The translations under genes were made by a program, and so were the position numbers. Of a DNA stretch of 64,000 nt, positions 40,802-58,122 are shown in pieces (within the stretch, counting starts at the first letter, position 1; the number at the start of each line of letters is the position of its first letter). The notes below the pieces were generated by a model. The model saw only the letters and a program-made list of their open reading frames with translations. It made no database searches and was not told the DNA's origin. The stretch covers positions 1-64,000 of the IMG/VR virus record IMGVR_UViG_3300042502_001233; one strand, given 5' to 3'.

Positions 40802-41673
40802 ATTTTATTATCATTTAAAATGTTTAATAACATTTTTTTAACAACATCAAATTTATTTTTAATATCAAATTCCCAAAATCTAATTATTTTAATATTATTG
40901 TCTTTTAACATTATTTCTTTTCTTTTATCTCTATCTATATTTTTAAGTTGAATGGAATCTAGGGTTTTATCTTTATAGACCAATGGGTTTGCATGCCAAT
41001 AATCACCATCACATTCCACCACTAAGTTATACTTAGGTAAATAAAAATCAACTAAAAAATTATTTATTCTATGATTTTTAATAAAATCTATTGATTCATC
41101 AATTAATAAATCTTTAATTTTTAATTCAATAATAGTTGGTTTTCTATTTTGAATCATCGCTTTATTTAAACGATTAATTATTATTTGTTTTTCTTCATCT
41201 GTTTTTTTAGACCAATTTAACTTAGCCTTTTCCGATAATTTCTCAGAATATTTTAAAATTCTTTCATCATTAAATTTAGTTTTCCCATTATTCCAAGCTG
41301 TTGAACCATACATAGGGTTATTTTCGCCACTTAAGCTTGGTAAGGTACCAGATTTAAACATATCAATTCTAGTTTTAGCTAACTTCTCAGATTTTATTCT
41401 AACTATTTGTGAATTTTCTTTAGTTTTACCTTTTAACGGTGAAACTTTACCAAACATTGCATTGTTTTCACCACTATTTAATCTAGATTTTATTTGATAT
41501 GTTTGTTCTTTAGAGTGTTTCAATTTTAATTTACCTATTTTAACACTAATCGCTTCTAATGTTCTATTATATTTCGAATTAAACAATGGATATATCTCAC
41601 TTACAGAAAAACCGTTATTTTCATATAATTCTCTTAAATACCTAACTTCTTCTTCAGACCAATATTTTCTCAT
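40798..41673 (-). CDS. Vsr/DUF559-like homing endonuclease with NUMOD3
   Basis: GENNPMYG; VDFY..VECDGDYWH..RFWE. Confidence 0.8.
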   Translation of the reverse strand: MRKYWSEEEVRYLRELYENNGFSVSEIYPLFNSKYNRTLEAISVKIGKLKLKHSKEQTYQIKSRLNSGENNAMFGKVSPLKGKTKENSQIVRIKSEKLAKTRIDMFKSGTLPSLSGENNPMYGSTAWNNGKTKFNDERILKYSEKLSEKAKLNWSKKTDEEKQIIINRLNKAMIQNRKPTIIELKIKDLLIDESIDFIKNHRINNFLVDFYLPKYNLVVECDGDYWHANPLVYKDKTLDSIQLKNIDRDKRKEIMLKDNNIKIIRFWEFDIKNKFDVVKKMLLNILNDNKI

Positions 41674-42974: not shown

Positions 42975-43025
42975 ACCTATAAATATCCTATAAAATAAAA
43001 AAGGGCCTCAGTGGGCCCTAATTTA

Positions 43026-43439
43026 TTATACTACATGTAGCTTTTCAATCAAATCTTTTTTGTATTGTTCCATAACTTTGTAATTTACGTCTGGAGCATC
43101 CATTGAAGCTATGATTTCTTTCAAACCATCAATTATAGGTTGTGTTTTTCTTTTAAGTCTAACACTCATGTAACCTTGGTCCAAAAACATAAGATGTTTA
43201 AGACCATTCTTAGCGTTAGGGCTTGACCAACCGTCAATGTTGAATTGGATGTTGATTCTGTTGGGTGTTAAATCTTCATTTAACAATATTCCCATCCAAT
43301 ATGTTTTACCATCTTTGGTTTTAGCGTCAAAAAGTCTAAAAGCTACTTTTTTATCGTTGATTGTTTTTACAAATACATGTTCTGATGTTTTGTTTAAATA
43401 TGTGTTCAATTCTTGTTGAACTTGTTCTAATGTTTTCAT
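43026..43439 (-). CDS. hypothetical protein
   Basis: 137-aa ORF downstream of RAPP minigene. Confidence 0.7.
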   Translation of the reverse strand: MKTLEQVQQELNTYLNKTSEHVFVKTINDKKVAFRLFDAKTKDGKTYWMGILLNEDLTPNRINIQFNIDGWSSPNAKNGLKHLMFLDQGYMSVRLKRKTQPIIDGLKEIIASMDAPDVNYKVMEQYKKDLIEKLHVV

Positions 43440-43556
43440 TTTTTTTTCTTTTTAAGTTTATTATTTTTATGTTTTGTCCAAGAACATAGACACGATGTCT
43501 ATGTTGATGTCTATGTTGGACATGTTGTCCAAGATAGTGTCCAAGTTATAATAAAC

Positions 43557-43586
43557 TTAAGGCGGTGCTCTGATAATCTATTTCAT
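43557..43586 (-). promoter_or_regulatory. amber-containing leader minigene M-K-(TAG)-I-I-R-A-P-P-stop
   Basis: ATG AAA TAG ATT ATC AGA GCA CCG CCT TAA. Confidence 0.55.
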
Positions 43587-43608
43587 AGTTTCTATTATTT
43601 AAAGTTTG

Positions 43609-43683
43609 AGGTCGGAGAGAGATTTGAACTCCCACCGTAAAGGTTCTTGCGGAACCAGTGCCTTACCATTCGACCATCCGACC
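43609..43683 (-). tRNA. atypical tRNA-Cys(GCA)-like
   Basis: GGTCGGA/TCCGACC, U73, GGTT-CCGCAAG-AACC. Confidence 0.6.
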
Positions 43684-43689
43684 CTGTTA

Positions 43690-43947
43690 TTACGGATAAA
43701 TCCTTGCGGTTATACCTTCATCCGTAGTTGTTATTTGTATCTTGCCTTTGAATTTCAACGACCCTTTGGTACTTGGGTTATCTGGCGTTTCTTTGGTTGA
43801 AAATCCTATACCAGAATCCATAACCAAGTGGTCCACATAATAGGTTTGACCTTTGGCTTTTATTACCCACATCGGAATGCTAGGTTCTTGCAAATGCATT
43901 TTGTTGAAATGAAATATAATCTCGGTTCTTTTATCTATGTTAAGCAT
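43690..43947 (-). CDS. hypothetical protein
   Basis: 85-aa ORF coupled to Pth2-like gene. Confidence 0.7.
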   Translation of the reverse strand: MLNIDKRTEIIFHFNKMHLQEPSIPMWVIKAKGQTYYVDHLVMDSGIGFSTKETPDNPSTKGSLKFKGKIQITTTDEGITARIYP

Positions 43948-44290
43948 ATTGAACCTCCTTTCCCATTAACGGACATGAGCTCGTTAATTTTTTGGCAGCA
44001 TCGGTTGGCTCAAAAGCAACAGCCGTTATTTCGTTACCCAAGTCAGGTTCACGGAAAATTGTGTGTTTGATACCCATAAAGATAGCTTTGGTAATCAATT
44101 TGATTAGCGCTTCTTCATCAGCGACAGTTAATAATGCTAAATAGTTTGATTTTGTTTGCCATTCGGTAGCTTCAACAGGGTGTTGATATTGGAAATCTAC
44201 CAAGGCATGAGCTGATTGAACAGCTTGTTGTGAAGGTGTTAAGTCACGTCTTGTGACAACTCTTAATTTTTGATTGTTAATCTAAGTCAT
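43940..44290 (-). CDS. peptidyl-tRNA hydrolase 2-like protein with in-frame TAG at codon 3
   Basis: ATG ACT TAG ATT... continues in frame: KLRVVTRRDL..QQAVQSAHA...FREPDLGNEITA. Confidence 0.75.
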
Positions 44291-44350
44291 AATTTCTAAT
44301 TTTTTGTTTATTATAAATATACCACACTTTTAAAAAATGTAAAGTGTTTG

Positions 44351-44423
44351 TAGTTCTAATCGGACTCGAACCGATATCTCTCCGTTTTAGAGGCGGGTGT
44401 ATTCACGTTAATACTATAGAACC
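44351..44423 (-). tRNA. amber suppressor tRNA (anticodon CTA)
   Basis: GGTTCTA/TAGAACT acceptor, loop CT-CTA-AA, canonical T arm; weak anticodon stem. Confidence 0.8.
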
Positions 44424-44473
44424 TTATTGTGGTACAAAGATACCACAAGTTTTTTAATTGTACAACTTTTTTT

Positions 44474-44686
44474 CTAACTTTTTTTCAAAAATTTTCCAAG
44501 TCTTAAAACTTTCTCTTTAAATTCCTCAAAAGTTCCGTTGTTTTCAATGATGATATCAGCACATGTTTTGTCAATATCAAACGATGATGGGTCTTCCAAC
44601 GGAAGTCTTTCAGACGCATCAACCCAAATGATTATATCAAATAAACCTTGTCTCATACACTCGTTGATTTCAGCTCTATCTCGCAT
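44474..44686 (-). pseudogene. 3' half of interrupted dNMP kinase-like gene
   Basis: continues 50297..50590 at YVG|MRD; IIWVDA, ADIIIENNG. Confidence 0.75.
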
Positions 44687-45302
44687 CTAAAGATAATTCA
44701 ATAATTAAATCGTTAACAACTTTTTTTAACGCTTTAATGTCTTTTTTATCATTATAAATAACTTTACTAAAGTTAGTATAATCATCTAGATTAGTTTCTG
44801 AGATATGGTTTAAATCACGTAAGCTGTTCTCTCTAACACCCATTGGGTCGCCTTCCAGTCGAATTAAATAACCACCTTCTTTAAGGATATAGTCAGCTTC
44901 ATTAACAAATCTAACATCTGGTATCACAATAATTTTACCATTATTTAACTTAGTATCTAATTCTTCATTAAAGAATGATTTAACCCAAATATCAGTATCA
45001 TAATTATCTCTAAATAAATCAGTACCAACTAATTGTAATGTTTCACCAATAGTTTTATCAAATTGTTTAATAACTATATTTTTTTGGTCTTGAGTATAAT
45101 TACGAATCTCATTGCAGAATGGTTTATTAGCTTCATGAGTTGTCGTCATACGTATACCACTAATTATTTCCGTAATTAACCTTAATTTATCAGCCAATGC
45201 ATGTCTTTCTACTTTACCATGTAATTGCTCAGCTAATAATTCAGCAAAGGTATCTTTACCACTACCTATTTTTCCACTAATACCTATAATTTTTTTTTTC
45301 AT
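44676..45302 (-). CDS. deoxynucleoside monophosphate kinase (element-borne replacement)
   Basis: GISGKIGSGKDT, LQ.VGT..R, DVRF.NE, HISE. Confidence 0.85.
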   Translation of the reverse strand: MKKKIIGISGKIGSGKDTFAELLAEQLHGKVERHALADKLRLITEIISGIRMTTTHEANKPFCNEIRNYTQDQKNIVIKQFDKTIGETLQLVGTDLFRDNYDTDIWVKSFFNEELDTKLNNGKIIVIPDVRFVNEADYILKEGGYLIRLEGDPMGVRENSLRDLNHISETNLDDYTNFSKVIYNDKKDIKALKKVVNDLIIELSLDAR

Positions 45303-45305
45303 ATT

Positions 45306-48300
45306 TTACATTTTAAATGCTGTAACATAAATAAATTTATCACTTTCTCTTAAAACCAAGTTATCAAAACCTATTTCTAAAAGTATTCTTTTAAATTCAT
45401 CTTCATTATCTTTCCATTGATTGGCTGTTTCTGCAATCATGATTGGTTGCATAGTTCTCAATACTCTGTAAGCTTCTTTTAAATAATCTTCATAATTGCT
45501 ACCCATAAGTGATAAACTAAAAACAACAACATCTATAGATTCATCGTCTAAAGGTAATTTTGAAATATCACAAGCTATTACTGAATCATCAATGGCTACG
45601 TGGTCAAATGATAACACTTTGTTGGGTATTTCAGTTTTTAAAAGGTTTTCACCACATCCAAAATCACCAACAATATAATCTTTACGTTTAATTTGTTTAG
45701 CGATTTCTTTATATGGTATTTCTGACCAAGTTTTTCTAGCTTCACGATACAAAGTATGATACTGATACCACTCAGTTGGGTCCTCGGTTAATCGTTTGTT
45801 AGTTGTAATAGAATTTGATACACCCCAGCGTTTATTCATTTGACTGAACTCACCATATTTAGGTAGGTTATGATTAACATAATTTGGATTCAAAGGTATT
45901 TTAAATTCTTCTCTATCAAACGTGATAATCTCACCGTTGTTTAAACGATTAACCCATTCGGCCAACTCTTGTTGTGCTTCAAACACTAATCGTTCTCTTG
46001 AAGGTAGGAGATTTCTAGGAACACGCCCATCAATTGCTAAATCACCCAAAGTTGCTTTAAATCTAATTATATTATGTCTACGTCTGTCCCAACTCCAAAT
46101 ATGTTCGCCAGCTGGTATAATAACTTGTGGAATATAAATGTTAACTTTATCAAATTTAGAACCTTGTCTATTAACACGACCAACTAATTGGTCATATTCA
46201 GAACTGGTCCATGGAAGTACTATTGGTATCAATGTGTCACACACATATTGAATACCGTCTACACCAGTACCAACTGGTGCCGAACCAATTAAAACATCTA
46301 ATTTACCCTTTTTAAAAGCTTCTAAACCACTTTTATCGTCACCAGTATAAAATCCTATACTAAAACCTAAATCTTTTACGAATTTACCTATAATATCGGT
46401 TAATTCAGTAACATAATATGTGTATATTAAAGTCCCCCTTTTTATTTTATCTTTAACAGAATCAAGTTTAGTATTAATTAAAACTTTTTCGAACTCGCTA
46501 ACAGCACCTTTAGGTATTGCTATGATTTCATTAAACAAATGACTACCATCAGATTCTATGATTTCTTCGTTAACTGAAATACCATAATTAGGTTTATAAC
46601 GAAGACCATATCTTGTTAATGCTTTATACATTTCAATACCATTTACAATGTTTTCTTTGGTTTCTAATTCGTTATGAGATTCACCTGTTAACAATTCAAT
46701 TAATTTTTTAGGTTCTGTTAAATTGTTAATAATTGGTGTTGCCGACATAGCCATAACTAATAAATTTTCATTATCTTCTTTAGAGTTTATTATTAGTTTT
46801 TTAACAACATTCCTTCTAATAGATTCTTCGTTATCACGCTGCTTAACATTTTGAACTTCATCTAAAATTATGTAATCAATCTGATTATATTTTAACAATT
46901 CAGAAACAATATATTCACCATCTTCTAACTGAAACGTTTCATAATTTAATACTAAATAATTATAAACATTTTCTTTTAATTTTATGTTATGTTTATGAAC
47001 TAAATTATAATTAGAATTAACACCTTCTAATTCTTTCTTAACGTAAATCTGATTGTTAGTGAAATATTCATTTATGGACTCAACCCAGCCCTCAACAGTT
47101 GCATTATTACAAATTATTATAGTGTTTTTAGCACCAGCTAACCTACCAGCAAATATTGCAGATAAAGTTTTACCAGCACCAGTTCCAGACCAGTTACCGT
47201 ATTTTTTCTCTTTAATTAAACGATAACTAATTAGTTTTTGCATTAAGTTTGGCTGATGTTGAAAAATGTAATCACTTGGGGCGACTATTTTACAAACTTC
47301 TTCGTATTCACTAAAAAACCAGTCTTTAATTATTGTAAACCTTTCACCACCAGTTTCACCTCTTAAAGTATCAACATCTATTTGATTGTTAAGAACTTTA
47401 TTCCACAATTTTTTTAATTGATTCTTTAACAAGAAATCAATATTTTCATCATCCAAAGAAGCGGTAACCATTGTATTATCATACATATGTAATTCTTTAA
47501 TTGGGTCTAAAGGTGCTAATGACTCTGGTTCTTCTTCAGTAATTTCATCAACATTACCCTCAACTAAATCAACTTCTAAATTAGTTGGTTCGTTTAGAAT
47601 AGAATCATTGTTGGTGTCATCGTCAGACTCATCGTTTTCTAACGTATCTAATATATCGTGAATTAATCTTTCTCTTTCCTCCGAACCAGCTTCAGAAGAA
47701 GTTAAAGAATCTAATGACCCTATTTGTTGTATTTTTTTAGCGAGATTGTTTGAATTTATTATGGTTATTAGTTCAACTGAGTCCATATAAATTAAATCTT
47801 TTTCTAAAGATTTAATAAAGTCTAACATATAACGTTTATTCCAATAGTGACCATCACCTAAAGAACCTAACCAATCACCCATAGAAACCCACCCAGAATA
47901 TTTGTATGTTTTTTCTGGCATTGCTGGGATGTTGTCTGGTTTTTTTATGTTTTTCCATTCACTATAAGATTTAAGACCTAAAGTTCTAGCATATTCTCTA
48001 GCTTCTTCAAATGGTAAAAACTCCCTAAAATTTGATAACTTACCATGACCTAACCAATCACTCCAAGATACCCAACCAGATTCTTTATAAACTTGAGATG
48101 GTGATGCTGGAATTTCATCTGGTTTAGCTGAAGATTTAGAAAACAACCTCCATTCTTTTTCACCAGTTAATTTTAAACTTCTAGCATATTCTCTAGCTTC
48201 TTCAAATGGTAGATAATCTCTTTTGTTACATGATATGTAATTAGTTCCTAACCAATCACCCAGCGACACCCAACCAGAATCTTTATAAACCCTATCTGGG

Positions 48301-49202
48301 GCACTAGGTATATTATTTGGTCTTAATTCAGATTTAATAAATTCAACCCATTCCTTTTGTCGGGTTATATTTAATTTTCTAACATATTCTCTAGCCTCTT
48401 CAAACTGTAAAAATTTTTTATCAAAATTTGATAACTTACCGTGACCTAACCAATCAACCCAAGATACCCAACCAGAATCTTTATATGTTTTATTTGGTGA
48501 TTTAGGAATTTTAACATCATAATCGGTAGATTTTAAATATGTTCTAAACTCATTAGTGTTATTTAATTTTAAATTATGTATTATTTTCCTAGCTTCTTTA
48601 AAATCATAAAACTCATCAAAATCTTTTTTATAACCTAAAAAATCACCCCAAGATTTCCACCCATAATTTTTATACATTACGTGAGGTGAATAAGGTAAAC
48701 CATTCACATTTGTTTTGTTTAAATATTCATGATATTTAGTTTGTGATGTTAAACCTAAAATTTTAACTACGTTTTTGGCCTCTTCAAAGGATAAATAATT
48801 TCTATTTTTTAAAGCAACGTAATTAGTTCCTAACCAATCACCCAGCGACACCCAACCAGAATCTTTATATATTTTATCTGGCGATGTAGGTATGTTGTGA
48901 GGCCTTAATTCAGACTTATAAAAATTTTTCCAATCTTGTTGTGTTTTTAATCCTAAACTCTTAACAAAATTTTTAGCAATTTCAAAAGGTAGGTAACCGT
49001 CTTTTAGATTCACCGATGAACATTTAGTTTTATTTAACAAAGCATATGGTGTTATTAAATGTTCTGTATTAAACTTTTTATCAATAACCACCACTTTTTG
49101 GTTAGTATTGACATATTCGACTTTGGAATAATCATAATTATCGTTCCAATTACCACTATCTCTTAATTTTTGTAAAAACTCTTTTGTTTTATCAGTCATC
49201 AT
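45306..49202 (-). CDS. repeat-containing SF2 helicase fused to SAM methyltransferase
   Basis: 6 repeats PFEEAR...GWVSWGDWLG; GTGAGKT, DEVQ, SAT; DFGCGE, FSLSLMG. Confidence 0.8.
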   Translation of the reverse strand: MMTDKTKEFLQKLRDSGNWNDNYDYSKVEYVNTNQKVVVIDKKFNTEHLITPYALLNKTKCSSVNLKDGYLPFEIAKNFVKSLGLKTQQDWKNFYKSELRPHNIPTSPDKIYKDSGWVSLGDWLGTNYVALKNRNYLSFEEAKNVVKILGLTSQTKYHEYLNKTNVNGLPYSPHVMYKNYGWKSWGDFLGYKKDFDEFYDFKEARKIIHNLKLNNTNEFRTYLKSTDYDVKIPKSPNKTYKDSGWVSWVDWLGHGKLSNFDKKFLQFEEAREYVRKLNITRQKEWVEFIKSELRPNNIPSAPDRVYKDSGWVSLGDWLGTNYISCNKRDYLPFEEAREYARSLKLTGEKEWRLFSKSSAKPDEIPASPSQVYKESGWVSWSDWLGHGKLSNFREFLPFEEAREYARTLGLKSYSEWKNIKKPDNIPAMPEKTYKYSGWVSMGDWLGSLGDGHYWNKRYMLDFIKSLEKDLIYMDSVELITIINSNNLAKKIQQIGSLDSLTSSEAGSEERERLIHDILDTLENDESDDDTNNDSILNEPTNLEVDLVEGNVDEITEEEPESLAPLDPIKELHMYDNTMVTASLDDENIDFLLKNQLKKLWNKVLNNQIDVDTLRGETGGERFTIIKDWFFSEYEEVCKIVAPSDYIFQHQPNLMQKLISYRLIKEKKYGNWSGTGAGKTLSAIFAGRLAGAKNTIIICNNATVEGWVESINEYFTNNQIYVKKELEGVNSNYNLVHKHNIKLKENVYNYLVLNYETFQLEDGEYIVSELLKYNQIDYIILDEVQNVKQRDNEESIRRNVVKKLIINSKEDNENLLVMAMSATPIINNLTEPKKLIELLTGESHNELETKENIVNGIEMYKALTRYGLRYKPNYGISVNEEIIESDGSHLFNEIIAIPKGAVSEFEKVLINTKLDSVKDKIKRGTLIYTYYVTELTDIIGKFVKDLGFSIGFYTGDDKSGLEAFKKGKLDVLIGSAPVGTGVDGIQYVCDTLIPIVLPWTSSEYDQLVGRVNRQGSKFDKVNIYIPQVIIPAGEHIWSWDRRRHNIIRFKATLGDLAIDGRVPRNLLPSRERLVFEAQQELAEWVNRLNNGEIITFDREEFKIPLNPNYVNHNLPKYGEFSQMNKRWGVSNSITTNKRLTEDPTEWYQYHTLYREARKTWSEIPYKEIAKQIKRKDYIVGDFGCGENLLKTEIPNKVLSFDHVAIDDSVIACDISKLPLDDESIDVVVFSLSLMGSNYEDYLKEAYRVLRTMQPIMIAETANQWKDNEDEFKRILLEIGFDNLVLRESDKFIYVTAFKM

Positions 49203-49279
49203 TTATAAAATTTCTACAAAGATACGAATTAAAATTTACTTATTAAAGAAAAAGTCATATATTTATAATAAAAATTATT

Positions 49280-49420
49280 ATGAAGAAAGAAAATAAAATT
49301 ATTGGAATTGCTGTTGATAAAGAATTACTTAAAAAAGTTGACGCTGGAAACTATAACCGTTCTAAACTTATCGATGATTTGTTGACCAAACACTACGAAG
49401 AAAAAAAAGTTAAAAAATAA
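49280..49420 (+). CDS. small RHH-like protein
   Basis: MKKENKIIGIAV...NRSKLIDDLL; paralog of 54207..54347. Confidence 0.7.
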   Translation: MKKENKIIGIAVDKELLKKVDAGNYNRSKLIDDLLTKHYEEKKVKK

Positions 49421-49492
49421 TTCATAAATTTATGACTTTTTTAAATTTCCACGATATTTATAAGTATATAACATTTATTAATACTCATTATC

Positions 49493-49654
49493 ATGGGAAG
49501 AAAAGCAAAAATACAAGAAGAAAAGAAAGATAAAATTAGTATCTCTATCTCAAAAGAAAACTACGAAGCAATGGCTTCAGAAGGTATCAATAAGTCACAA
49601 CTAATCAATTGGTTGTTAGAACAACACTTTAATTTATTAAATTATGGAAAGTAA
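49493..49654 (+). CDS. small RHH-like protein
   Basis: MGRKAKIQEEKK...NKSQLINWLLEQHF; paralog of 54421..54588. Confidence 0.7.
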   Translation: MGRKAKIQEEKKDKISISISKENYEAMASEGINKSQLINWLLEQHFNLLNYGK

Positions 49655-50309
49655 AATTTGTAATACGTGTAATACTGAATTACCATTAGATAATTTTTCT
49701 AAAGACAATGCAACTAAAGATAAATTAAAAAATACATGTAAAAAATGTTCCTCAATTAAAAACGCTGAATGGAGAAAAAATAATAAAGAAAAAAGAAAAC
49801 AATACCATAAAGAATATCATAATAAAAATAAAGAAAAATTAAAAGAGTATAATAAAAAGATTAACAATGAATTTAAAAAAACACATGGTATATCTAGACA
49901 TACTTTATGGGATAGAGAGAATAAAGATAGACGTAAAGAATTATTGAAAATTAGACTAAAAAATCCAGTAGAGGCTTTAAAGTATAAATTAAGGAGTTCT
50001 TTAAATGCAATTTTTAGATATAACGGTTATACTAAAAAACATAAATCACACGATATTATAGGTTGTTCATATGAAGAATTTAAACAACACCTTGAATCTC
50101 AATTTGAACCTTGGATGAATTGGGATAATCGTGGGTTATATAATGGTGAGTTTAACTATGGTTGGGATATTGACCATATGGTACCATTATCAACGGCAAC
50201 AACTGAAGAAGAGTTAATTAATTTATGTCACTACACAAACACACAACCATTATGTAGTAAAGTTAATAGGGATATAAAGAAAAATAAAGTTGATTTTTAT
50301 CCAACATAA
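49644..50309 (+). CDS. HNH homing endonuclease
   Basis: WDIDHMVP...HYTNTQPLC..N. Confidence 0.85.
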   Translation: MESKICNTCNTELPLDNFSKDNATKDKLKNTCKKCSSIKNAEWRKNNKEKRKQYHKEYHNKNKEKLKEYNKKINNEFKKTHGISRHTLWDRENKDRRKELLKIRLKNPVEALKYKLRSSLNAIFRYNGYTKKHKSHDIIGCSYEEFKQHLESQFEPWMNWDNRGLYNGEFNYGWDIDHMVPLSTATTEEELINLCHYTNTQPLCSKVNRDIKKNKVDFYPT

Positions 50310-50590
50310 CAGTCAGAATGTTCCAAGATACCTTTGGCTAGTTTGGCTCTGTCATCTTTGTTGTAATCACAAATAAGTTCTTTCCATTCAGCTCTGTGGT
50401 TAACTCTATCCTCAAAACATTCTTCTGGTGTTGTATAACCATATTTGTCTTTAAGTGTGTTGTATAGAAATATATCAGCAGCGGCTTGTGATGATGATTT
50501 GAATGTTAACCCATAATTATCTCGCCATATTTCAGCTAACGTATCTTTCGCGTGGCGAGCGTGTCCGATTACCAGAATTTTTTTAAGCAT
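50297..50590 (-). pseudogene. 5' half of interrupted dNMP kinase-like gene
   Basis: P-loop GHARHAKDT; ends at the insertion junction. Confidence 0.75.
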
Positions 50591-50644
50591 AATTTTATTT
50601 TTTATTAGAAGAAACCCTACCTTTTACAGTAGAGTTCCTTGGTT

Positions 50645-51583
50645 TTATTTAAGTTGGTTTAGCACTGCTGTGCTACCCACAACTTGTGGAACCCTTGGTG
50701 TGTTAGGGTCAACATCAATCCATTTTAAATATTCAATATACAACGGAGTGATTTCTCTTTTTCTAATTTGCATCGCTTCAGCTTGCGCTTTAGCTTCGAT
50801 AATTGTTTGTTGTGCGTTACCGTTAGCAATTGCCACTTTCTTTCTAGCTTCGGCCTCAGCTGTAAGCGCTTTTTGGTCTTCCGCTTGTGCTTGTTGAATG
50901 GCTTTGGTTTTTGCAATAATGGTTTCTTGTAACGATTGTGGTGGAACGATGTTAGTCCTTAACTGTGACACAGTAAACCACTTGGATAAACGTTTGTTAC
51001 ATTCTGTTTTGATAGCAGCTTCAAATAATTCACGTTCGTTGAAGATTTTGTCAACTTCCCATTTGTTAGCTACGTCATTTATAGCACCTACTATGGCTGT
51101 TTGTAACCAACCTTGTTCTACCGATTTAATATCCAATCTTAAGTTTTGGAACATATCACCAACAGCACCAGCTTTTAATGAATAGTTAAAACTAGGGTGA
51201 ATCGTAGCTGGGAAACCACCTTTGGTTATGACTTGTTGTTTTTCGTAACCAATTGTTTGTTGGAAGGTTGGGAATTCATAAAGCTGTTCAGCCCATGTGT
51301 TGAATACAACCCAACCAGTTTTGTATTCATACTTTGACACACCACGTGCATCTCCAGTTAAGTTTACTTTGATACCTACGTTACCAGCGTCAACTCTACT
51401 TAATTTGTAAGGTTGTATAAACCCTACTACAAGGCCAATTACAAAAATGCTTATTGGTTTGATTAACCAACCGCTGTTGAACTCTGGTCCCCATTGTGTT
51501 TGTTTTGTGCTATTTTCCCTCGTGGAAAGAGCAATTACTATCGCTACTATTAGCGATAAGACAATAATAATTGTTGAAATCAT
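50645..51583 (-). CDS. SPFH/band 7 membrane protein
   Basis: TM segments, VDAGNVGIKV, A/E-rich coiled coil. Confidence 0.85.
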   Translation of the reverse strand: MISTIIIVLSLIVAIVIALSTRENSTKQTQWGPEFNSGWLIKPISIFVIGLVVGFIQPYKLSRVDAGNVGIKVNLTGDARGVSKYEYKTGWVVFNTWAEQLYEFPTFQQTIGYEKQQVITKGGFPATIHPSFNYSLKAGAVGDMFQNLRLDIKSVEQGWLQTAIVGAINDVANKWEVDKIFNERELFEAAIKTECNKRLSKWFTVSQLRTNIVPPQSLQETIIAKTKAIQQAQAEDQKALTAEAEARKKVAIANGNAQQTIIEAKAQAEAMQIRKREITPLYIEYLKWIDVDPNTPRVPQVVGSTAVLNQLK

Positions 51584-51588
51584 AAAAT

Positions 51589-51783
51589 TTATTTGTTTAA
51601 GTTATTAATTACGTATTTGTGTGTTTTGCTAATCATGTAAACCGTTGCTATTAGCGCTCCAATTGTGGTTATAAATTGGGTAGTTTCATTCATTGGTCTG
51701 GAGATTATGTATTCGGCAAGAATATTCATACCTATTACCCATAATACCCAACCTAGAATCAATGTTAAAGGTGTTGTTTTCAT
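51589..51783 (-). CDS. small membrane protein
   Basis: two transmembrane segments. Confidence 0.6.
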   Translation of the reverse strand: MKTTPLTLILGWVLWVIGMNILAEYIISRPMNETTQFITTIGALIATVYMISKTHKYVINNLNK

Positions 51784-51859
51784 ATTTTTAAGTTTTTTTT
51801 ACAAATATACTAAATCTTTTTCATATATGCAAATAAAAAAGGGGCAAATGCCCCTCTTA

Positions 51860-52183
51860 TTATGATAGAAGTTCGATTCTTCCTCTGGATATATCTTTAA
51901 GACTTGCAGTCTTGTTGGTTATGTGGTCAACTACCACCCCATCCTTGACTCTGTACGTTCTTCGTTTGTCGCTTCTGTCACCTTTACCGATTTGTTCACG
52001 TCTCTCGTCAACGCTTTCTTGTATGTGACCAGTTCTGTAATATTCGTTCACACGCTTTTTAAGCTCTTTTAAGGCATCTTCTTTGTTCTGGTGTTGATTC
52101 CTTCCATCTCGAACTACTTTGAGCCCTGTGGCCGCGTGTGTGACTACTACACATGAATCTGTGGTATTTTTGTGCTGACCACC
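51860..52183 (-). pseudogene. orphaned 3' part of release factor gene starting at GGQ
   Basis: GGQHKNTTDSCVVVTH...KRRTYRVKD...IELLS homologous to the end of 55208..55891. Confidence 0.88.
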
Positions 52184-52186
52184 AAA

Positions 52187-52510
52187 TTAAACGGCACGAT
52201 ATTCATTAAGCATTTTTTTAATATATTCCCAACAAATATTTGCGTTTTTAAATTCAACATCACCAAATTGACATAATCTCGTGTATTCTTCATCAATTTC
52301 ATTGGAAAATTTAGTGCTATATTTTTTCACATCATCTTTTGATAATTCGTAAAAACTAGGTAAACCATTTTTAACTAAAATATTAGAAAACGCTTCAATT
52401 CTAGTATCTTTATCACCACTATAAAAATGGTCAATCATCTGACAACGACTAGAAATAAGTTCTTCAACTACTTCTAAAGCTTTTATTTTATTTTTAATAT
52501 CTTTTTTCAC
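52187..52510 (-). CDS. hypothetical cargo protein
   Basis: 107-aa ORF following the GHKL gene. Confidence 0.6.
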   Translation of the reverse strand: MKKDIKNKIKALEVVEELISSRCQMIDHFYSGDKDTRIEAFSNILVKNGLPSFYELSKDDVKKYSTKFSNEIDEEYTRLCQFGDVEFKNANICWEYIKKMLNEYRAV

Positions 52511-52512
52511 GA

Positions 52513-54051
52513 TTAATAAATTATAAATTTTCGTAACCTTTCACTAACTTTAATGAAATATTCGGTTAACATTATTTCTTTTTCAGTATCATTATAATAC
52601 TCAATATCAGCTAAAGCCAACCCTAATGAAGCTAATAACTTAAAAGCTACATCTTTAGTTTCAAAGTTAGTTTTACTCATAAATTTAGACCAAAAAGGAT
52701 GTTCTTGATTTATTTCTAAAATATATAGACCTTGTTCTTTAACCGTTTTAAACATCAAACCATTTTCACCTAATTTAATAAATCTATAATCAAAAAATTT
52801 ATCATCTCTGACTCTAGTTTGATTTGGTTTACTTCCTGGTTTAACCGTTTCTTTCTTTTCAACTGGTGTCTCACGTTTTGTGTTCATACCCCTTTCTTTT
52901 TTAATATCAATAAAACGGTTATTATTGATACTTTTAGTTGACTCATCTAACTCTTTTTTAACATCCTCAGTCAACTCTATATTCAATGTTTGGTCTTCTC
53001 TACTTCTGATTGTTTTAATATAAGGTTGGATAGCATTTCTACAAATATCTTTAAACCCTTGGTCAATATCATTTTTATCCTTTTCATGTATCATTTTATT
53101 GAAAGTTGACCCGAATAAGTCATCACCACTACCATTAACAAATAATTCAATTCTAACACCATTAGAATACCCATCACCTATTTTACCCACAATACCTAAA
53201 TCCAAACCAGCCCCAACTAAACGTTTATTTCTATAAATATAAAGGCCAGCATTACTACTATTTCTACCAATTTTTGTTGATAATGAAGTACTAACACCTT
53301 CTAAATTATAAACACTAAATTTAATTTCATTCTCACCATAAACTATTTTTTCATTTGATGTGAGACATTTGGAGTAAAATTCTTTACGAAACATTGGGTC
53401 GAAAGATTCAACTAACTCATCGTTAACAAATAATTTAACATTTAATTCATCAATAAAATATTTGAAATATAAACTAAGTTTACTTTTTAAAATATCTTTA
53501 AAAATAGAAGGGTTTGAATTTGATACTTTATCAAGTTTATATAATTTAATAATAGTACCTGTATCAGAACCAACGTCTTCTTTAAACGATTCTAATTCTT
53601 CTGGAGTACCAGTTCTAATAGGAATAATAAAAGTATTTTGGTCTAACAAAACCTCTAAATCATAAGTGGCAATATATAATGAACCATTTTCACTTTTTGT
53701 TATCACATCAAAAGCTTTACCGATAGATAAGGCAGCAGCTTTAAGACCAGTACCATATGAACCTAAATCGAACTCTCTGTTTTTACCAGTTAAAGCACCA
53801 AGTTTAAATGCTTCTTTTAACGTTTCTAAATCCATACCACAACCATCATCACAAATTTTAATGTGGTCATACTCATCTTTGATTTTCTTAATTGTAATTT
53901 TAACGTTTTTTGAGTTAACGTTTGTGTCTAGTGAATTATCAATAATATCAGCAATTGCCGCATAATTATTGTAACCAGAATTTCTTAAAGTCGCTAAGAA
54001 ATTGACATTTGGAGTTACATCCAAACCATTTGTTTCGTTTAATTTTTCCAT
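52513..54051 (-). CDS. MORC-like GHKL ATPase
   Basis: AIADIIDNSLD, DDGCGM, GSYGTGLK, GT. Confidence 0.85.
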   Translation of the reverse strand: MEKLNETNGLDVTPNVNFLATLRNSGYNNYAAIADIIDNSLDTNVNSKNVKITIKKIKDEYDHIKICDDGCGMDLETLKEAFKLGALTGKNREFDLGSYGTGLKAAALSIGKAFDVITKSENGSLYIATYDLEVLLDQNTFIIPIRTGTPEELESFKEDVGSDTGTIIKLYKLDKVSNSNPSIFKDILKSKLSLYFKYFIDELNVKLFVNDELVESFDPMFRKEFYSKCLTSNEKIVYGENEIKFSVYNLEGVSTSLSTKIGRNSSNAGLYIYRNKRLVGAGLDLGIVGKIGDGYSNGVRIELFVNGSGDDLFGSTFNKMIHEKDKNDIDQGFKDICRNAIQPYIKTIRSREDQTLNIELTEDVKKELDESTKSINNNRFIDIKKERGMNTKRETPVEKKETVKPGSKPNQTRVRDDKFFDYRFIKLGENGLMFKTVKEQGLYILEINQEHPFWSKFMSKTNFETKDVAFKLLASLGLALADIEYYNDTEKEIMLTEYFIKVSERLRKFIIY

Positions 54052-54206
54052 AAATAAAAATTATTTTATATTTAATCGTATTATTTTACGCATTCTAAAT
54101 TTTTCAATTTAAAATACATGCAAAGATACTAACAATATCATCGCTTGTCAAGTTTTTTTCTATTTATTTTTAATTAATTTTCAATATATTTATTAAAAAC
54201 AAAACT

Positions 54207-54347
54207 ATGGACCAGAAAAAAATAAGCGTAGCATTATCACCAGAAGTTCTAAAACAATTAGAAGATAGTAACTATAATAAATCAAAATTAATCGATTCTT
54301 TATTAACTGAACACTTTAAAAAAGAAAATGAAAAAAAGTTAAAATAA
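54207..54347 (+). CDS. small RHH-like protein
   Basis: MDQKKISVAL...NKSKLIDSLL. Confidence 0.7.
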   Translation: MDQKKISVALSPEVLKQLEDSNYNKSKLIDSLLTEHFKKENEKKLK

Positions 54348-54420
54348 AAATCGCACTGGTACGACTTTTTTCTAATTTCTAGATATTTATAGATATAACA
54401 ATTATCTAACACAAAATATC

Positions 54421-54588
54421 ATGGGAAGAAAAGCAAAACTACAAGAAGAGAAAAAAGGTAAACTATCAATCACCATCTCATCCGATAACTATGAAATACT
54501 AGTTAATGAAAACATCAATAAATCTAAATTAATCGATTGGTTATTAGAACAACATTTTAACTCTTTAAACAATGGGAAGGGTGCTTAA
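54421..54588 (+). CDS. small RHH-like protein
   Basis: MGRKAKLQEEKK...NKSKLIDWLLEQHF. Confidence 0.7.
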   Translation: MGRKAKLQEEKKGKLSITISSDNYEILVNENINKSKLIDWLLEQHFNSLNNGKGA

Positions 54589-55195
54589 TGATGAACAGAA
54601 AAAAGCTAGAGCTGAATACCAAAAAGCTTGGCGAGAAGCTAATAAAGAACGTTTAGCTGAATGGCATAGAGAATATAGAAAGAATAACCCAGAAAAGAAC
54701 AAAACCAACACTAAAGCGTATAGAGAGCGTCACCCAGAAAAAGCAAAAGAATCAACTAAAAAATATAAAGCGAATAATCAAGACAAAATTAAAGCTGCAT
54801 CAATAGTGTATAGAGGTAGAAAACTTGAATTACATAATATCAAAAAAGCTAATGACCCAGTGTATAATTTAAAATGTACTGTTAGAAGCGGTATATTAAA
54901 ATCTTTCTCCAGAATCAACGCTAAGAAAAACAATAAAACAGTTGAAATTCTAGGATGTTCTTATGAGTTTTTAAAAGAACATATTGAATCAAAATTTGAA
55001 CCATGGATGACTTGGGGCAACAAAGGTCTTTATAATGGTGAATTAAACTACGGTTGGGATGTAGACCACATCATACCACTGGATACAGCGGTGACCGAAG
55101 AAGATGTGATTAGACTTAACCATTATACCAACCTACAACCACTTTGTAGTAAAATCAATCGAGATATTAAAAAAAATAACCCTAGTTACTACTAG
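54572..55195 (+). CDS. HNH homing endonuclease
   Basis: WDVDHIIP...HYTNLQPLC; close paralog of 49644..50309. Confidence 0.85.
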   Translation: MGRVLNDEQKKARAEYQKAWREANKERLAEWHREYRKNNPEKNKTNTKAYRERHPEKAKESTKKYKANNQDKIKAASIVYRGRKLELHNIKKANDPVYNLKCTVRSGILKSFSRINAKKNNKTVEILGCSYEFLKEHIESKFEPWMTWGNKGLYNGELNYGWDVDHIIPLDTAVTEEDVIRLNHYTNLQPLCSKINRDIKKNNPSYY

Positions 55196-55207
55196 GGTTA
55201 TTTATTA

Positions 55208-55891
55208 TTATGAAAGAAGCTCTATTTTACCTCTTAATATGTCTTTTAGACTAGCAGTCTTATTAGTGATATGGTCTACAACCATATCATCCTTTACACG
55301 ATAAGTCCTTCTTTTATCGGCACGACCACCTTCACCAATTTGTTCATTACGGTTTTCAATGGTTAATGAATCATGACCTGTTTTATAAAAGTTATTAACC
55401 CTTTGAGTTAATTCAGCAATCGCTGCTTCTTTATTTTGGTGTTGACTTCGACTATCACGTCTAACTTTAATCCCAGTTGCTATATGAGTTACAACAACAC
55501 ATGATTCAGTTTTATTCCTTTTTTGCCCACCGTTCCCAGTTCCTCTGGTTGTTTCCAAACGATATTCACTAGGATGTAATTCTACTTCCTTATAATCGTT
55601 TTCTTCCATAAGTGCTACGGTGATTGAACTTGTATGAACCCTACCTTTTCTTTCGGTTGGTGGTACTCTTTGCCACCTATGTGAACCTACATGGTTTAAG
55701 AACACATTTTTAACATTATATCCAGATATTCAGATAGTTATCATACCATCTTTCTCATCAATAACTTTAGCTTCAAATGAATAATTTTTGCAAGCTTTTA
55801 AAAAAATATCTCGCATATCTTTAATTAATAATTTTGAATCATCACCGCCTTCTGACGCTCTTAATTCTAATAAAATTTTATTTGTTTTCAT
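55208..55891 (-). CDS. class I peptide chain release factor-like protein (no domain 1) with in-frame TGA at codon 54
   Basis: LELRASEGG..., HRWQRVPPTERKGRVHTS, GGQ; frame continuous across TGA 55730-55732. Confidence 0.85.
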
Positions 55892-56669
55892 TGTATTTTG
55901 GTCTATTTAAATTGCCTTCATATATAACACCGTTTATTTCCCTTGTTGTTCCCCACATTGGTCTAAGATTCGATAAAGCGTTTACCACACTGGCTGGAGT
56001 TTCTGGTGGAAAACTAATAATTTGTTTTATATGGTCTATGTGCCATTCTCCATAATTATCCCATGTCATTCCGTCAGTAAATAAGTTTGTGATATGTTCT
56101 TTAAATTCTAAAGCTGAATAGCCTAACATATCTATGGTCTTACCAGTTTTTTTGTTATGTAAATCACGTAGCGAATTTTTTAATATTCGCCTCCAAGCTA
56201 TTACGTGTGGGTTTTTTTGATTATATAATTTAGCGTTTTCTTTTATTTTTTCTTTATTATTTTTTCTATATTCTTTACCGTAAGCTGATTTTTTTTCACG
56301 ATTATCTATTAAATATTGTTTGTCATACGCTTTTTTCTTTTCTTTATTTAACGCAACGTATTCTTTATTTTTTTGTTTAACATATTCAATATTTTCTTTA
56401 CGATATTCTTTTTGATAATTATTTCGTTTATCTTTATTTTCCAAACGGTGGTTAATAAAATACTCATTTAACTTTTCTTTATTCTTTTCCCTATACTTTG
56501 CATCGAGTAACTTCTTTTTTTGTAAAGAAACATCACTATGGATTTTCACATCAGGATATAACTCCCTTAACTGTTTAACCGTTAAATTGTGTGATTTTAA
56601 ATGTTTGGTCGATAATGAAGATAAATCTTTTCCACATACTGGACAAGTTACAAATGAAGATGGTTCCAT
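55878..56669 (-). CDS. HNH homing endonuclease
   Basis: CPVC..HL..H, K/E repeats, WHIDHI...NLRPMW..N. Confidence 0.85.
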   Translation of the reverse strand: MEPSSFVTCPVCGKDLSSLSTKHLKSHNLTVKQLRELYPDVKIHSDVSLQKKKLLDAKYREKNKEKLNEYFINHRLENKDKRNNYQKEYRKENIEYVKQKNKEYVALNKEKKKAYDKQYLIDNREKKSAYGKEYRKNNKEKIKENAKLYNQKNPHVIAWRRILKNSLRDLHNKKTGKTIDMLGYSALEFKEHITNLFTDGMTWDNYGEWHIDHIKQIISFPPETPASVVNALSNLRPMWGTTREINGVIYEGNLNRPKYNENK

Positions 56670-56731
56670 AATATTCTTTTATAATAAATATCACAAATAA
56701 TTAAAAAAACCACAAATGGCAAAGAATTCCA

Positions 56732-56926
56732 TTCGTTCTTAAAGATTTCTTTTGCGTTTTTACCCGTTAGTCAGATGCTAACAAATCCTAACCTATCTTC
56801 GGTTATTATTCAGTCGATGTTATTGTTCTTCGCTGTTTTAATGTAAATGTCGCGCATTTCACAAACCAACAGCTTCGCATCGGTTCCACCTTCTGCGTCT
56901 CGGATTTCTAAATTAATTTTTCCCAT
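56732..56926 (-). pseudogene. orphaned original 5' part of release factor gene (two in-frame TGA)
   Basis: MGKINLEIRDAEGGTDAK...ID*II...FVSI*LTGKNAKEIFKNE. Confidence 0.85.
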
Positions 56927-56962
56927 TGGTTTTGTTTTTTGTTGTTTGTTATTAGTTTTAAT

Positions 56963-56989
56963 AAAAAACCCCATATTGCTATGGGGTTT
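56963..56989 (-). terminator. intrinsic terminator
   Basis: CCCCAT-AGCAAT-ATGGGG-TTTTTT. Confidence 0.75.
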
Positions 56990-56998
56990 AGTATTTTA

Positions 56999-57053
56999 CA
57001 GAATAGTTTTTGTTTTTTTTTCCTTAAAAATTTCAATTGCTGAATCTATTCTT
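56999..57053 (-). ncRNA. TTCAGCAA-stem RNA, copy 2
   Basis: AGAATAG-ATTCAGCAA...CTATTCTG. Confidence 0.45.
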
Positions 57054-57057
57054 CTAG

Positions 57058-57145
57058 TTGCGGAAGTAGGACTCGAACCTACAACACAGTGTTACTGCTC
57101 CTCTAGGTTATGAGCCTAGCATGTTTCCATTTCCACCATTCCGCG
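57058..57145 (-). tRNA. tRNA-Met(CAT), initiator-like C1:A72, long variable arm
   Basis: CTAGG-CTCATAA-CCTAG + 20-nt variable arm. Confidence 0.8.
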
Positions 57146-57152
57146 ATGTATT

Positions 57153-57812: not shown

Positions 57813-57870
57813 TTCAATTTCTTTAATAATAAATATCTCAGAAAACTGAAAAGTACAAAAAAGTCTCCAG

Positions 57871-57943
57871 TTGCGGGGGCACGACTCGAACGTGCGACCT
57901 CAAGGTTATGAGCCTTGCGAGCTACCTACTGCTCTACCCCGCG
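57871..57943 (-). tRNA. tRNA-fMet(CAT)
   Basis: CGCGGGG start, C1:A72. Confidence 0.92.
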
Positions 57944-57950
57944 ATGTTAG

Positions 57951-58030
57951 TGCGGTAGGCTGGAGTGACCCAGCTATCTTAGTGAATGCTGTGAAGCAAT
58001 CGTTCAGATAAAAACTTAATTTCTACCGCG
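57951..58030 (-). ncRNA. tRNA-like RNA, possible TCA loop
   Basis: GCGGTAG/CTACCGC stem, GCTGG-GTCACT-CCAGC arm, central CTTCACA. Confidence 0.35.
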
Positions 58031-58036
58031 TGTGGC

Positions 58037-58105
58037 CAGAATCTCTGTTTTGCTTGTTTTTTCTCAAATGTAAAATTGCTTTTTTATTTGCTGAAAAGAT
58101 TCTTT
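58037..58105 (-). ncRNA. TTCAGCAA-stem RNA, copy 3
   Basis: AGAATCT-TTTCAGCAAAT...AGAGATTCTG. Confidence 0.45.
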
Positions 58106-58122
58106 AACCATATAATGTATCT

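Follow-up and report, generated by a model that had tools for sequence, protein, structure and literature searches.

In the window, i.e. the whole 64,000-nt stretch of phage DNA that was analysed, the two halves of a P-loop kinase gene lie on the minus strand on either side of a 5.6-kb block of five genes. The N-terminal half (50297..50590, -) encodes 97 aa and ends at a TAA that is supplied by the first three bases of the block, and the C-terminal half (44474..44686, -) encodes 70 aa and starts at the native ATG of M98. Between them, two small ORFs on the plus strand encode a 46-aa protein (RHHa, 49280..49420) and its 53-aa paralogue (RHHb, 49493..49654), both putative ribbon-helix-helix (RHH) regulators, and are followed by a 221-aa HNH endonuclease gene (49644..50309, +), whose start is overlapped by the end of RHHb by 11 nt. 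In the divergent orientation are a gene for a 1298-aa helicase-methyltransferase (45306..49202, -) and a gene for a complete, 208-aa T4 gp1-type dNMP kinase (44676..45302, -), whose ORF ends at a TAG 11 nt inside the C-half sequence. All ORFs were found where the original prediction had placed them.

To test whether the two flanking ORFs are halves of one gene in relatives, the condition on which the original prediction had been staked, we aligned them with homologous proteins. The halves aligned end to end, with no missing or extra residue, to intact proteins of 165-170 aa (524 hits), and the junction read DCYVG|MRDRAE. The N-half was 96% identical to the intact allele in the contig L104, and both halves together were 97% identical to the intact alleles P0253 and P0258 and carried no residue that is rare among 129 intact homologues. 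Furthermore, BLASTN against empty-site contigs, related sequences that carry the uninterrupted gene, placed window position 50300 next to 44686 in at least seven contigs (L001, L002, L003, L199, L200, L201 and L202). The insertion is therefore exactly 44687-50299 (5,613 bp), between codons G97 and M98 of a 167-codon gene. The filled allele also occurred at 99.99% identity in an independent ENA assembly (L100) and in a second NCBI assembly, and it was present in at least seven lake-water metagenomes sampled from 2020 to 2024, so it is not an assembly chimera. One lake metagenome (X11) held both the filled allele and an empty-site relative. These results confirm the observation that a 5.6-kb, cargo-carrying HNH element splits a kinase gene and brings a different kinase with it. 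However, the split gene is not demonstrably a dNMP kinase, as had been claimed. It belongs to phrog_38514 (function unknown) and scored 14 bits (E=0.037, P-loop only) against the Pfam DNMK model, below the cut-off. The best PDB hit of its profile was a dephospho-CoA kinase (E=0.007), and at the fold level it resembled dephospho-CoA kinases, phosphomevalonate kinase and the T4-type kinase 1dek (TM 0.55-0.64).

We next examined the ends of the insert and its target site. The insert showed no target-site duplication, no terminal repeats and no microhomology at its ends, and no transposase or integrase domain was found. No intron family was found in Rfam at E<=0.1 over 43000-59000, and an intein is excluded at the broken ends, since 97 + 70 = 167 residues align with intact proteins and leave no extra residue (for fractured genes with split inteins, see Dassa et al., 2009, PMC2677866). 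One end coincides with the 3' end of the HNH gene, which is convergent with the N-half and whose last three codons and stop lie in target-derived sequence. The insert end coincides with the HNH 3' end also in the relative L101, and the relative L103 keeps a 41-bp scar spanning that junction. Among 67 distinct intact alleles, the top-ranked 24-nt conservation window (nt 277-300 of the gene) contains the insertion site at nt 291|292, while the window centred on the site ranks 40 of 492, and DCYVGMR is one of the two most conserved peptides of the family. Comparison of the flanks with L001 or L104 showed no clear co-conversion tract, and in L101 the C-half lies within the high-identity block together with the dNMP kinase.

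The HNH (beta-beta-alpha-Me) endonuclease has an N-terminal CxxC...CxxC zinc ribbon and matched phrog_1035 (E=6.7e-15) and phrog_2255, although Pfam's own HNH models gave no hit at E<0.01. The motif W-D-x-D-H ... N ... N was invariant across 13 paralogues and orthologues, and at least 8 paralogues are present in the window's genome. For RHHb, the AF2 monomer model showed an extended N-terminus plus two helices (pLDDT 81), with the RHH antitoxin RelB as the best PDB match, but only at E=4; NCBIfam similarity of the small proteins to the CcdA and MazE antitoxins was weak, and Pfam gave no hit. RHHa is flanked by an 18-nt inverted repeat (49249-49266 / 49424-49441). In the divergent control region between RHHa and the helicase-methyltransferase gene (49203..49279), GTATCTTTG on the minus strand (49217-49225) lies 15 nt upstream of the cargo ATG; this motif was found 11 times against 0.87 expected, all in one orientation. 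The 1298-aa protein contains about six 66-aa INT_rpt repeats (198-nt tandem repeats in the DNA), an SNF2/ResIII helicase and a C-terminal Methyltransf_8 (Rrp8-like) domain (2zfu, E=5e-27). The 208-aa kinase scored 58.5 bits against the 27.1 cut-off of PF21448 and matched phrog_139 (E=1e-39) and PDB 1dek (E=1.9e-5); it is the only PF21448 gene in the 362-kb genome.

To explore how the block has spread, we compared it with that of related phages. The dNMP kinase was 85-94% identical, and the HNH 89% identical, in phages whose syntenic proteins were only 52-73% identical to those of the window, so the block has spread horizontally. The relatives formed a series: intact gene, full cassette, cassette without the helicase-methyltransferase, deletion form, dNMP kinase plus a decaying C-half, and dNMP kinase alone. 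The HNH, RHH and dNMP kinase core lacks the helicase-methyltransferase in L223 and L101, and the RHHb of L101 is truncated; the 5.6 kb is thus a composite rather than an indivisible unit. The junction between the dNMP kinase and the C-half is the same in the window, L101, L103, L105 and L106. However, the N-half is gone in L101, L223, L103 and L106, and only the window lineage retains it intact. The M98 start codon is mutated in L101 (ATG to AAG) and in L103 and L106 (ATG to ATA), the start region is deleted in L223, the remnant of L105 has stops, and L110 has no remnant. L101 and L223 have unrelated DNA beyond the HNH, so those copies could not home by two-sided homology. Furthermore, PF21448 was absent from nine records with the intact kinase, four of them 100% complete, and in the window's genome it occurs only inside the insert. 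This distribution fits non-orthologous replacement.

A sister cassette (52184..55204) lies 2 kb away. It contains HNH2 (54572..55195, +), RHHb2 (54421..54588, +) and RHHa2 (54207..54347, +), divergent from a 512-aa GHKL ATPase with weak MzaB similarity (54051..52513, -) and a 107-aa ORF, and it is inserted in an RF1-like gene. The 3' part of this gene upstream of the cassette is a foreign segment (53-80% identity) fused in frame, and the displaced resident 3' part (93-100%) remains at 51860-52183; the sister cassette thus repairs its target with a foreign 3' gene segment. In addition, the RHHa-RHHb-nuclease module recurred in 57 IMG/VR loci.

Taken together, these results suggest, with a probability of roughly 0.6, that 44687-50299 is a composite homing-endonuclease cassette inserted in a core P-loop kinase gene of a ~362-kb freshwater jumbo phage. 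In this view, the driver is an operon of two small RHH-like regulators and the HNH endonuclease, and the overlap of RHHb with the HNH start suggests coupled and probably autoregulated expression. The passengers, the SNF2 helicase/Rrp8-like methyltransferase with its HEG-type DNA-binding repeats and the dNMP kinase, would be transcribed divergently from their own promoter-like element. In a mixed infection the HNH would cut the uninterrupted allele at or near the conserved ...TGTTATGTTGGA|ATGCGAGAT... sequence, and double-strand-break repair on the filled allele would then copy everything between the two kinase halves, which act as homology arms. The imported dNMP kinase probably does the job of the destroyed kinase, so the insertion is tolerated inside a conserved gene; afterwards the endonuclease, the regulators and the kinase remnants would decay, leaving the T4-type kinase as a non-orthologous replacement. 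The comparative data themselves establish the insertion and its exact limits, its gene content, the horizontal spread of the HNH and dNMP kinase block, the decay series and the mutually exclusive distribution of the two kinases, whereas cleavage by this HNH, repair-mediated copying, functional equivalence of the two kinases and regulation by the RHH pair are inferred. The split kinase is only a fold-level relative of dNMP kinase, so functional equivalence is an inference. The interpretation of the original prediction is therefore partly supported: homing fits the comparative data, and functional rather than sequence repair of the target is supported indirectly by the distribution of PF21448 and the decay of the halves in other carriers, but a defence or anti-competitor role of the helicase-methyltransferase is not supported, as PADLOC gave only generic matches of about 60 residues of the helicase-C region to DrmD and DpdF (E 3e-6 to 9e-3) and NCBIfam DrmD scored 15 bits against a 610 cut-off.

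Two other explanations are unlikely, and about equally so. First, the two kinase halves may still be made as separate polypeptides that reassemble into a working enzyme ('genes in pieces'), as Aeh1 NrdA does around mobE, with the dNMP kinase as unrelated cargo rather than a replacement. Both halves are intact ORFs close to intact alleles, the N-half gets a clean TAA from the insert, and the native ATG of the C-half overlaps the dNMP kinase stop, which permits coupling. However, the pieces are lost or damaged in the other carriers described above, intactness in the window is equally explained by a recent arrival, and the split falls in a beta-strand/catalytic motif of a single small domain. Second, the cassette may be a restriction-modification-like selfish module, in which the helicase-methyltransferase protects the phage's own DNA, the HNH cuts unprotected DNA of competitors or the host, and the RHH pair acts like C-protein controllers, the position inside the kinase gene being a secondary consequence. 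The architecture, a methyltransferase divergent from controller-controller-nuclease with the controller overlapping the nuclease gene, mirrors C-controlled operons of the PvuII type. A helicase-Methyltransf_8 gene sits divergent from an RHH pair at five independent loci (the window, L097, L203, L226 and L245), the nuclease type varies among them, and these proteins carry the same DNA-binding repeats (INT_rpt, DUF723, DUF4379) as homing endonucleases. However, the same RHH-HNH module sits beside many non-methyltransferase genes (Acb3, NADAR, RtcB, Tpt1, a GHKL ATPase and the dNMP kinase), L223 and L101 keep the HNH without the methyltransferase, at least 8 HNH paralogues lack any partner, Methyltransf_8 is an rRNA m1A methyltransferase family and not a known DNA methyltransferase family, and the PADLOC hits are generic. 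A passive indel by illegitimate recombination, with the HNH merely carried along, is very unlikely: cleavage is only inferred, no clear co-conversion tract was seen and the region is a general hotspot with several unrelated nuclease insertions, but the boundary coincides with the HNH gene end in three lineages, the site lies in the most conserved 24 nt of the gene, the HNH and dNMP kinase block is much more conserved than its background, and the sister cassette has the same driver and geometry.

More speculatively, RHHa-RHHb-nuclease may drive a previously unrecognised class of modular homing cassettes in large freshwater phages, in which the nuclease (HNH, DUF723/DUF4379-repeat type or GIY-YIG) and the divergently transcribed passenger are both exchangeable; the passengers seen include the helicase-methyltransferase, Acb3, NADAR, RtcB, Tpt1, a DNA methylase, a GHKL ATPase and the dNMP kinase. 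Such cassettes would insert inside conserved genes and neutralise the damage either with a foreign copy of the broken gene segment or with a non-orthologous enzyme, and would thereby drive both the spread of counter-defence genes and non-orthologous gene displacement; this possibility is not excluded but remains doubtful.

Free-standing homing endonucleases are usually seen as minimal parasites that sit between genes, or that split a gene which must then still work in pieces. Here, one sits inside a conserved gene, carries 4.5 kb of passengers and appears to pay for the damage with a different enzyme of similar function, and metagenomic relatives preserve the whole trajectory from intact gene to clean replacement. 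That would be a concrete, testable route to non-orthologous gene displacement in viruses and a vehicle for moving accessory genes, possibly counter-defence genes, between phages that share little sequence, and the recurrent RHH-RHH-nuclease module gives a handle for finding more such cassettes.

Among the closest known systems is nrdA of Aeromonas phage Aeh1, split by the free-standing HNH gene mobE (Crona et al., 2010, PMC3045599; reviewed in Edgell et al., 2010, PMC2988022), where an HNH homing-endonuclease gene likewise sits inside the coding sequence of a conserved nucleotide-metabolism gene and leaves two separately translatable ORFs without an intron or intein. Here, however, the insert is 5.6 kb with five genes on both strands, including regulators, a 1298-aa accessory protein and a non-homologous enzyme of probably the same function, and relatives show the halves decaying rather than being kept as a working two-piece enzyme. 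In the HEG-islands of ICP1-like phages (Barth et al., 2023, PMC10448857), homing-endonuclease genes also travel with neighbouring cargo that is far more conserved than the rest of the genome, nuclease types are interchangeable, and the DNA-binding repeats (DUF723, DUF4379, CapR) are modular. HEG-islands are, however, defined as core or essential genes bracketed by two or more HEGs without discrete boundaries, whereas this cassette has one HEG, base-exact boundaries inside a gene, an accessory gene among its cargo and a dedicated pair of small putative regulators, and it appears to replace its target by a non-orthologue. Endonuclease-linked replacement of the 3' end of a gene, leaving the displaced original as a downstream pseudogene, is reported for Allomyces mitochondrial atp6 (Paquin et al., 1994); the sister cassette in the RF1-like gene does exactly this, while the cassette in the kinase gene carries no homologous replacement segment but a different kinase family instead. 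In C-protein-controlled type II restriction-modification operons (PvuII-type), a methyltransferase gene also lies divergent from small controller gene(s) that overlap the nuclease gene, but here the putative controllers are RHH-like rather than HTH, the methyltransferase domain is Rrp8-like and fused to an SNF2 helicase, and the nuclease family is multicopy, with most copies having no methyltransferase partner.

The window is the first 64 kb of a 362,018-bp virus record that CheckV rates 100% complete, and the sequencing runs that hold the region are lake-water metagenomes. The region is about 30% G+C, and a megablast search of it against the INPHARED phages returned no match. We considered an alternative genetic code because of a tRNA with anticodon CTA and in-frame TGA codons in an RF1-like gene. 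However, code 11 already gives 86% coverage by ORFs of 100 aa or more, with 85% TAA stops, so no other code was used. The tRNA in question (window 44350-44423, - strand; amber-reading, called 'Pyl' by ARAGORN) lies about 50 nt downstream of the kinase C-half, and the window holds 32 tRNA genes and the 3' part of a tmRNA (58850-59000).

To test whether the two flanking ORFs are halves of one gene, we first listed the ORFs, which reproduced every gene named in the original prediction. The 97-aa ORF (50590..50297, - strand) and the 70-aa ORF (44686..44474, - strand) both hit phrog_38514, at consecutive profile positions. A search with the N-half found 524 relatives, nearly all of 160-170 aa, and in an alignment with eight of them the two window ORFs tiled the full length with no gap or overlap, reading DCYVG|MRDRAE at the junction. 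Furthermore, BLASTN against contigs that encode intact relatives placed window 50300 directly next to window 44686 in seven contigs (L001, L002, L003 and L199-L202). The insert is therefore 44687-50299 (5,613 bp), and no base is duplicated or shared at its junctions. On the strand of the gene, the insert begins with TAA, which ends the N-half, and it ends immediately before the native ATG of M98. Both terminal ORFs of the insert, encoding the HNH endonuclease and the dNMP kinase (dNMK), run a few codons into target-derived sequence. The filled allele was 99.99% identical in an independent ENA contig (L100) and was present in a second NCBI assembly, and Logan contigs of at least seven lake runs sampled 2020-2024 held 61-99% of its words. 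In addition, one run (X11) contained exact pieces of the insert and also a 2.3-kb contig of a roughly 89%-identical relative that joins 44641 to 50300; filled and empty alleles therefore co-occur in that sample. Taken together, these results show that the predicted observation, an element splitting a kinase gene and supplying a different one, is real and well bounded.

We next examined what the insert contains. The HNH protein (221 aa) matched the phage endonuclease VII and HNH PHROGs and shared an invariant W-D-x-D-H ... N ... N motif with nine paralogues in the same genome and with orthologues in contigs L031, L097 and L101, although Pfam's own HNH models did not hit it. At least eight further paralogues of this HNH family lie elsewhere in the 362-kb genome, at about 84.0, 91.0, 211.4, 258.2, 264.3, 313.0 and 314.5 kb, none with an RHH pair. 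The two small ORFs (46 and 53 aa, termed RHHa and RHHb) are paralogues of each other, and RHHb overlaps the HNH start by 11 nt. A predicted structure of RHHb built from 29 sequences has an extended N-terminus and two helices; its best PDB match by Foldseek was the RHH antitoxin RelB, but this was not significant, and NCBIfam gave weak CcdA and MazE antitoxin hits, so that 'RHH' is plausible but not established. An 18-nt inverted repeat (49249-49266 / 49424-49441) flanks RHHa, and upstream of RHHb there is a conserved TTTCTAGATATTTATAGATATAACA-like stretch containing a direct AGATAT-N4-AGATAT repeat (49440-49480, 54375-54400 and upstream of RHHb in L097); these are candidate operators.

The 1298-aa protein has about six 66-aa INT_rpt repeats, visible as 198-nt tandem repeats, an SNF2/ResIII helicase and a C-terminal Methyltransf_8 domain that matches human RRP8 (2zfu, E=5e-27). 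More than 1,000 relatives exist in phage and Flavobacteriaceae contigs, with variable N-terminal repeats (INT_rpt, DUF723, DUF4379), and many of these have no endonuclease next door (L013/L014, L095 and L098). As a known defence protein it was rejected, since PADLOC and NCBIfam gave only generic helicase matches, and a literature search found no paper on an SNF2/Rrp8-type fusion in phages. The 208-aa protein is a bona fide T4 gp1-type dNMP kinase, matching PF21448 at 58.5 bits against a 27.1 cut-off, phrog_139 at E=1e-39 and PDB 1dek. A promoter-like element, GTATCTTTG, lies 15 nt upstream of the helicase-methyltransferase ATG and contains TAnnTTTG, the Bacteroidetes -7 consensus. Its complement, CAAAGATAC, occurs 11 times in the window (e.g. 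at 41730, 44435, 49217, 54121 and 58364), always on the + strand, against 0.87 expected; on the - strand it reads GTATCTTTG and lies upstream of - strand genes including both cargo genes. It is a likely host-type (Bacteroidota) promoter element.

The original prediction took the split gene to be a dNMP kinase as well. The intact protein, however, scored below the cut-off for Pfam DNMK (14 bits, P-loop only) and shares only the P-loop with the 208-aa kinase. A 34-sequence profile found dephospho-CoA kinase as its best PDB hit (E=0.007), and an AlphaFold model (pLDDT 90) matched dephospho-CoA kinases, animal phosphomevalonate kinase (TM 0.64) and T4 dNMP kinase (TM 0.57-0.64). It is a small nucleotide-kinase-fold enzyme of undetermined substrate, and the split falls just after strand 94-96, inside the conserved motif DCYVG|MRDR.

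To explore whether the insert behaves as a mobile homing cassette, we compared its site, borders and conservation among relatives. The insertion site (nt 291|292 of the gene) lies inside the most conserved 24-nt window (nt 277-300) of 67 distinct intact alleles, and DCYVGMR was one of the two most conserved peptides picked for the scan of the collection. The HNH-side boundary recurs: homology between the window and the related contigs L101/L102 stops exactly at window 50299, with unrelated DNA beyond it, and the relative L103 keeps a 41-bp scar (window 50271-50311, 97.6% identity) spanning the HNH-end/N-half junction. The dNMK/C-half junction is the same in the window, L101, L103, L105 and L106. 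In addition, the dNMK is 85-94% identical, and the HNH 89% identical, in phages whose syntenic proteins (PolyA polymerase, C39 peptidase and others) are only 52-73% identical to those of the window. In contrast, 50-nt identity profiles of the flanks showed no clear co-conversion tract. Cleavage by the HNH and repair-mediated copying are inferred from these comparisons, whereas the insertion and its limits are directly established.

Relatives fall into a series of states. An intact kinase without insert was found at 80 IMG/VR loci and in L001-L003 and L199-L202, while the full 5.6-kb cassette is present in the window lineage. In the IMG/VR locus L223, which has the core without the helicase-methyltransferase, C-half and dNMK lie divergent from RHHa-RHHb-HNH and there is no N-half. 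L101/L102 are a deletion form with HNH, only the last ~60 bp of RHHb, the dNMK and the C-half, and this form derives from one that had the RHH genes. L103 and L106 have the dNMK plus a C-half remnant but no HNH, and the M98 ATG is mutated to ATA. Finally, L105 keeps the dNMK with about 19 decayed codons of the C-half and L110 keeps the dNMK with none, both at the syntenic position. In the window itself the halves look fresh: they are 97% identical to the intact proteins P0253 and P0258, and no residue is rare among 129 intact homologues, where controls have a median of 2-3. One empty-site relative, L104, has a kinase gene (1763-2316) with a roughly 50-bp indel in the P-loop region; the gene is called as a 105-aa protein and may be an independent inactivation.

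We then asked whether the two kinases exclude each other. PF21448 was absent from nine records that carry the intact 167-aa kinase, four of which are 100% complete genomes of 288-369 kb, and in the window's own genome PF21448 occurs only inside the insert. Four fragments with the dNMK at this locus have no 167-aa kinase, but these are only 7-55% complete. Together with the erosion of the halves, this supports non-orthologous displacement, although it does not prove that the substrates are the same. We found no paper describing HEG-driven non-orthologous replacement.

A sister cassette sits next door. A second RHHa-RHHb-HNH operon (54207-55195) lies divergent from a 512-aa GHKL ATPase, which has weak MzaB similarity (89 bits against an 850 cut-off), and a 107-aa ORF. 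Relative to L001, this 3-kb block (element 2, 52184-55204, within window 51860-55705) is inserted in the RF1-like gene. The 5' part of that gene is resident-like (90-97%), its 3' part upstream of the cassette is foreign (53-80%) and fused in frame, and the resident 3' part (93-100%) is displaced downstream (ORF 51860..52051). That cassette therefore repairs its target by sequence, while the one under study carries a different enzyme. A third, more distant HNH gene (263 aa, 55878..56669, - strand; within window 55682-56974) is inserted at L001 position 8249/8259, accompanied by a second, divergent copy of the RF1-like 5' segment (55730..55891), and the resident 5' fragment remains at 56810..56974. 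The RF1-like gene is thus a three-part mosaic of foreign, resident and foreign sequence. This gene (PxT-type motif 'PPT', GGQ) has an in-frame TGA in the window (55208-55891, - strand) and two in-frame stops in L001 (8040-8735), which could be read-through, regulation or decay. Furthermore, GIY-YIG genes split or duplicate the 5' end of the PolyA-polymerase gene in relatives (L200:5947-8115 and L104:6880-9176), and the window has a 291-aa ORF with faint DUF559 similarity at the corresponding place (40798-41673). The 20 kb around the finding is a hotspot of nuclease insertions.

To determine how general the driver module is, we searched with a profile of RHHb and found 57 IMG/VR loci (L203-L259). 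Of these, 49 have RHHa just upstream and 29 have this HNH family immediately after RHHb, overlapping it by 8-17 nt, while others have DUF723/DUF4379-repeat proteins or GIY-YIG enzymes in that position. Divergent neighbours include the helicase-Methyltransf_8 (window, L097, L203, L226 and L245), Acb3 (a CBASS inhibitor), NADAR, RlaP, RtcB, Tpt1, an N6/N4 DNA methylase, a deoxyribosyltransferase-like protein and the dNMK; these may be cargo or resident genes, a distinction established only for the two cassettes in the window. L203 (6714-7165) shares 94% nucleotide identity with window 49209-49656 (the RHH pair), but its nuclease gene is unrelated and its helicase-methyltransferase is only 41% identical, indicating recent exchange of the regulatory module alone, so the control region itself is exchanged between cassettes. 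In L097 (6770-12712), an unrelated phage context, HNH-RHHb-RHHa lies divergent from a 1357-aa helicase-methyltransferase (59% identity), with a 48-aa ORF abutting the HNH end and a 204-aa ORF following the cargo, which may or may not be two halves of a split gene; neither flanking ORF had family hits, and the target gene could not be identified.

Collectively, the element is best read as a composite homing-endonuclease cassette that has carried a T4-type dNMP kinase, and in this lineage also a helicase-methyltransferase, into the most conserved part of a core kinase gene, and relatives document subsequent replacement of the old gene. The interpretation originally offered, homing of a defence or anti-competitor cargo with functional rather than sequence repair of the target, is supported only in part; the defence or anti-competitor label is not supported by present evidence. 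A restriction-modification-like module is kept as an alternative: the divergent methyltransferase / controller-nuclease layout resembles C-protein-controlled R-M operons, but we consider this reading unlikely because the module is usually found without any methyltransferase. A split intein, as in 'fractured genes' (PMC2677866), is excluded because the two halves leave no extra residues. An intron, a transposon and an assembly chimera are rejected, because no Rfam intron family was found in or around the insert, there are no terminal repeats, target duplication or transposase, and the same allele occurs in independent assemblies and runs.

Among known systems, in HEG-islands (PMC10448857) conserved cargo travels with interchangeable HEGs that have modular DNA-binding repeats, but those islands are core genes bracketed by two or more HEGs without discrete borders, and helicases, methyltransferases and RHH regulators are not mentioned in that work. 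In the Aeh1 nrdA/mobE 'genes in pieces' (PMC3045599, PMC2988022), an HNH gene also splits a nucleotide-metabolism gene; the difference here is the cargo and the decay of the halves in relatives.
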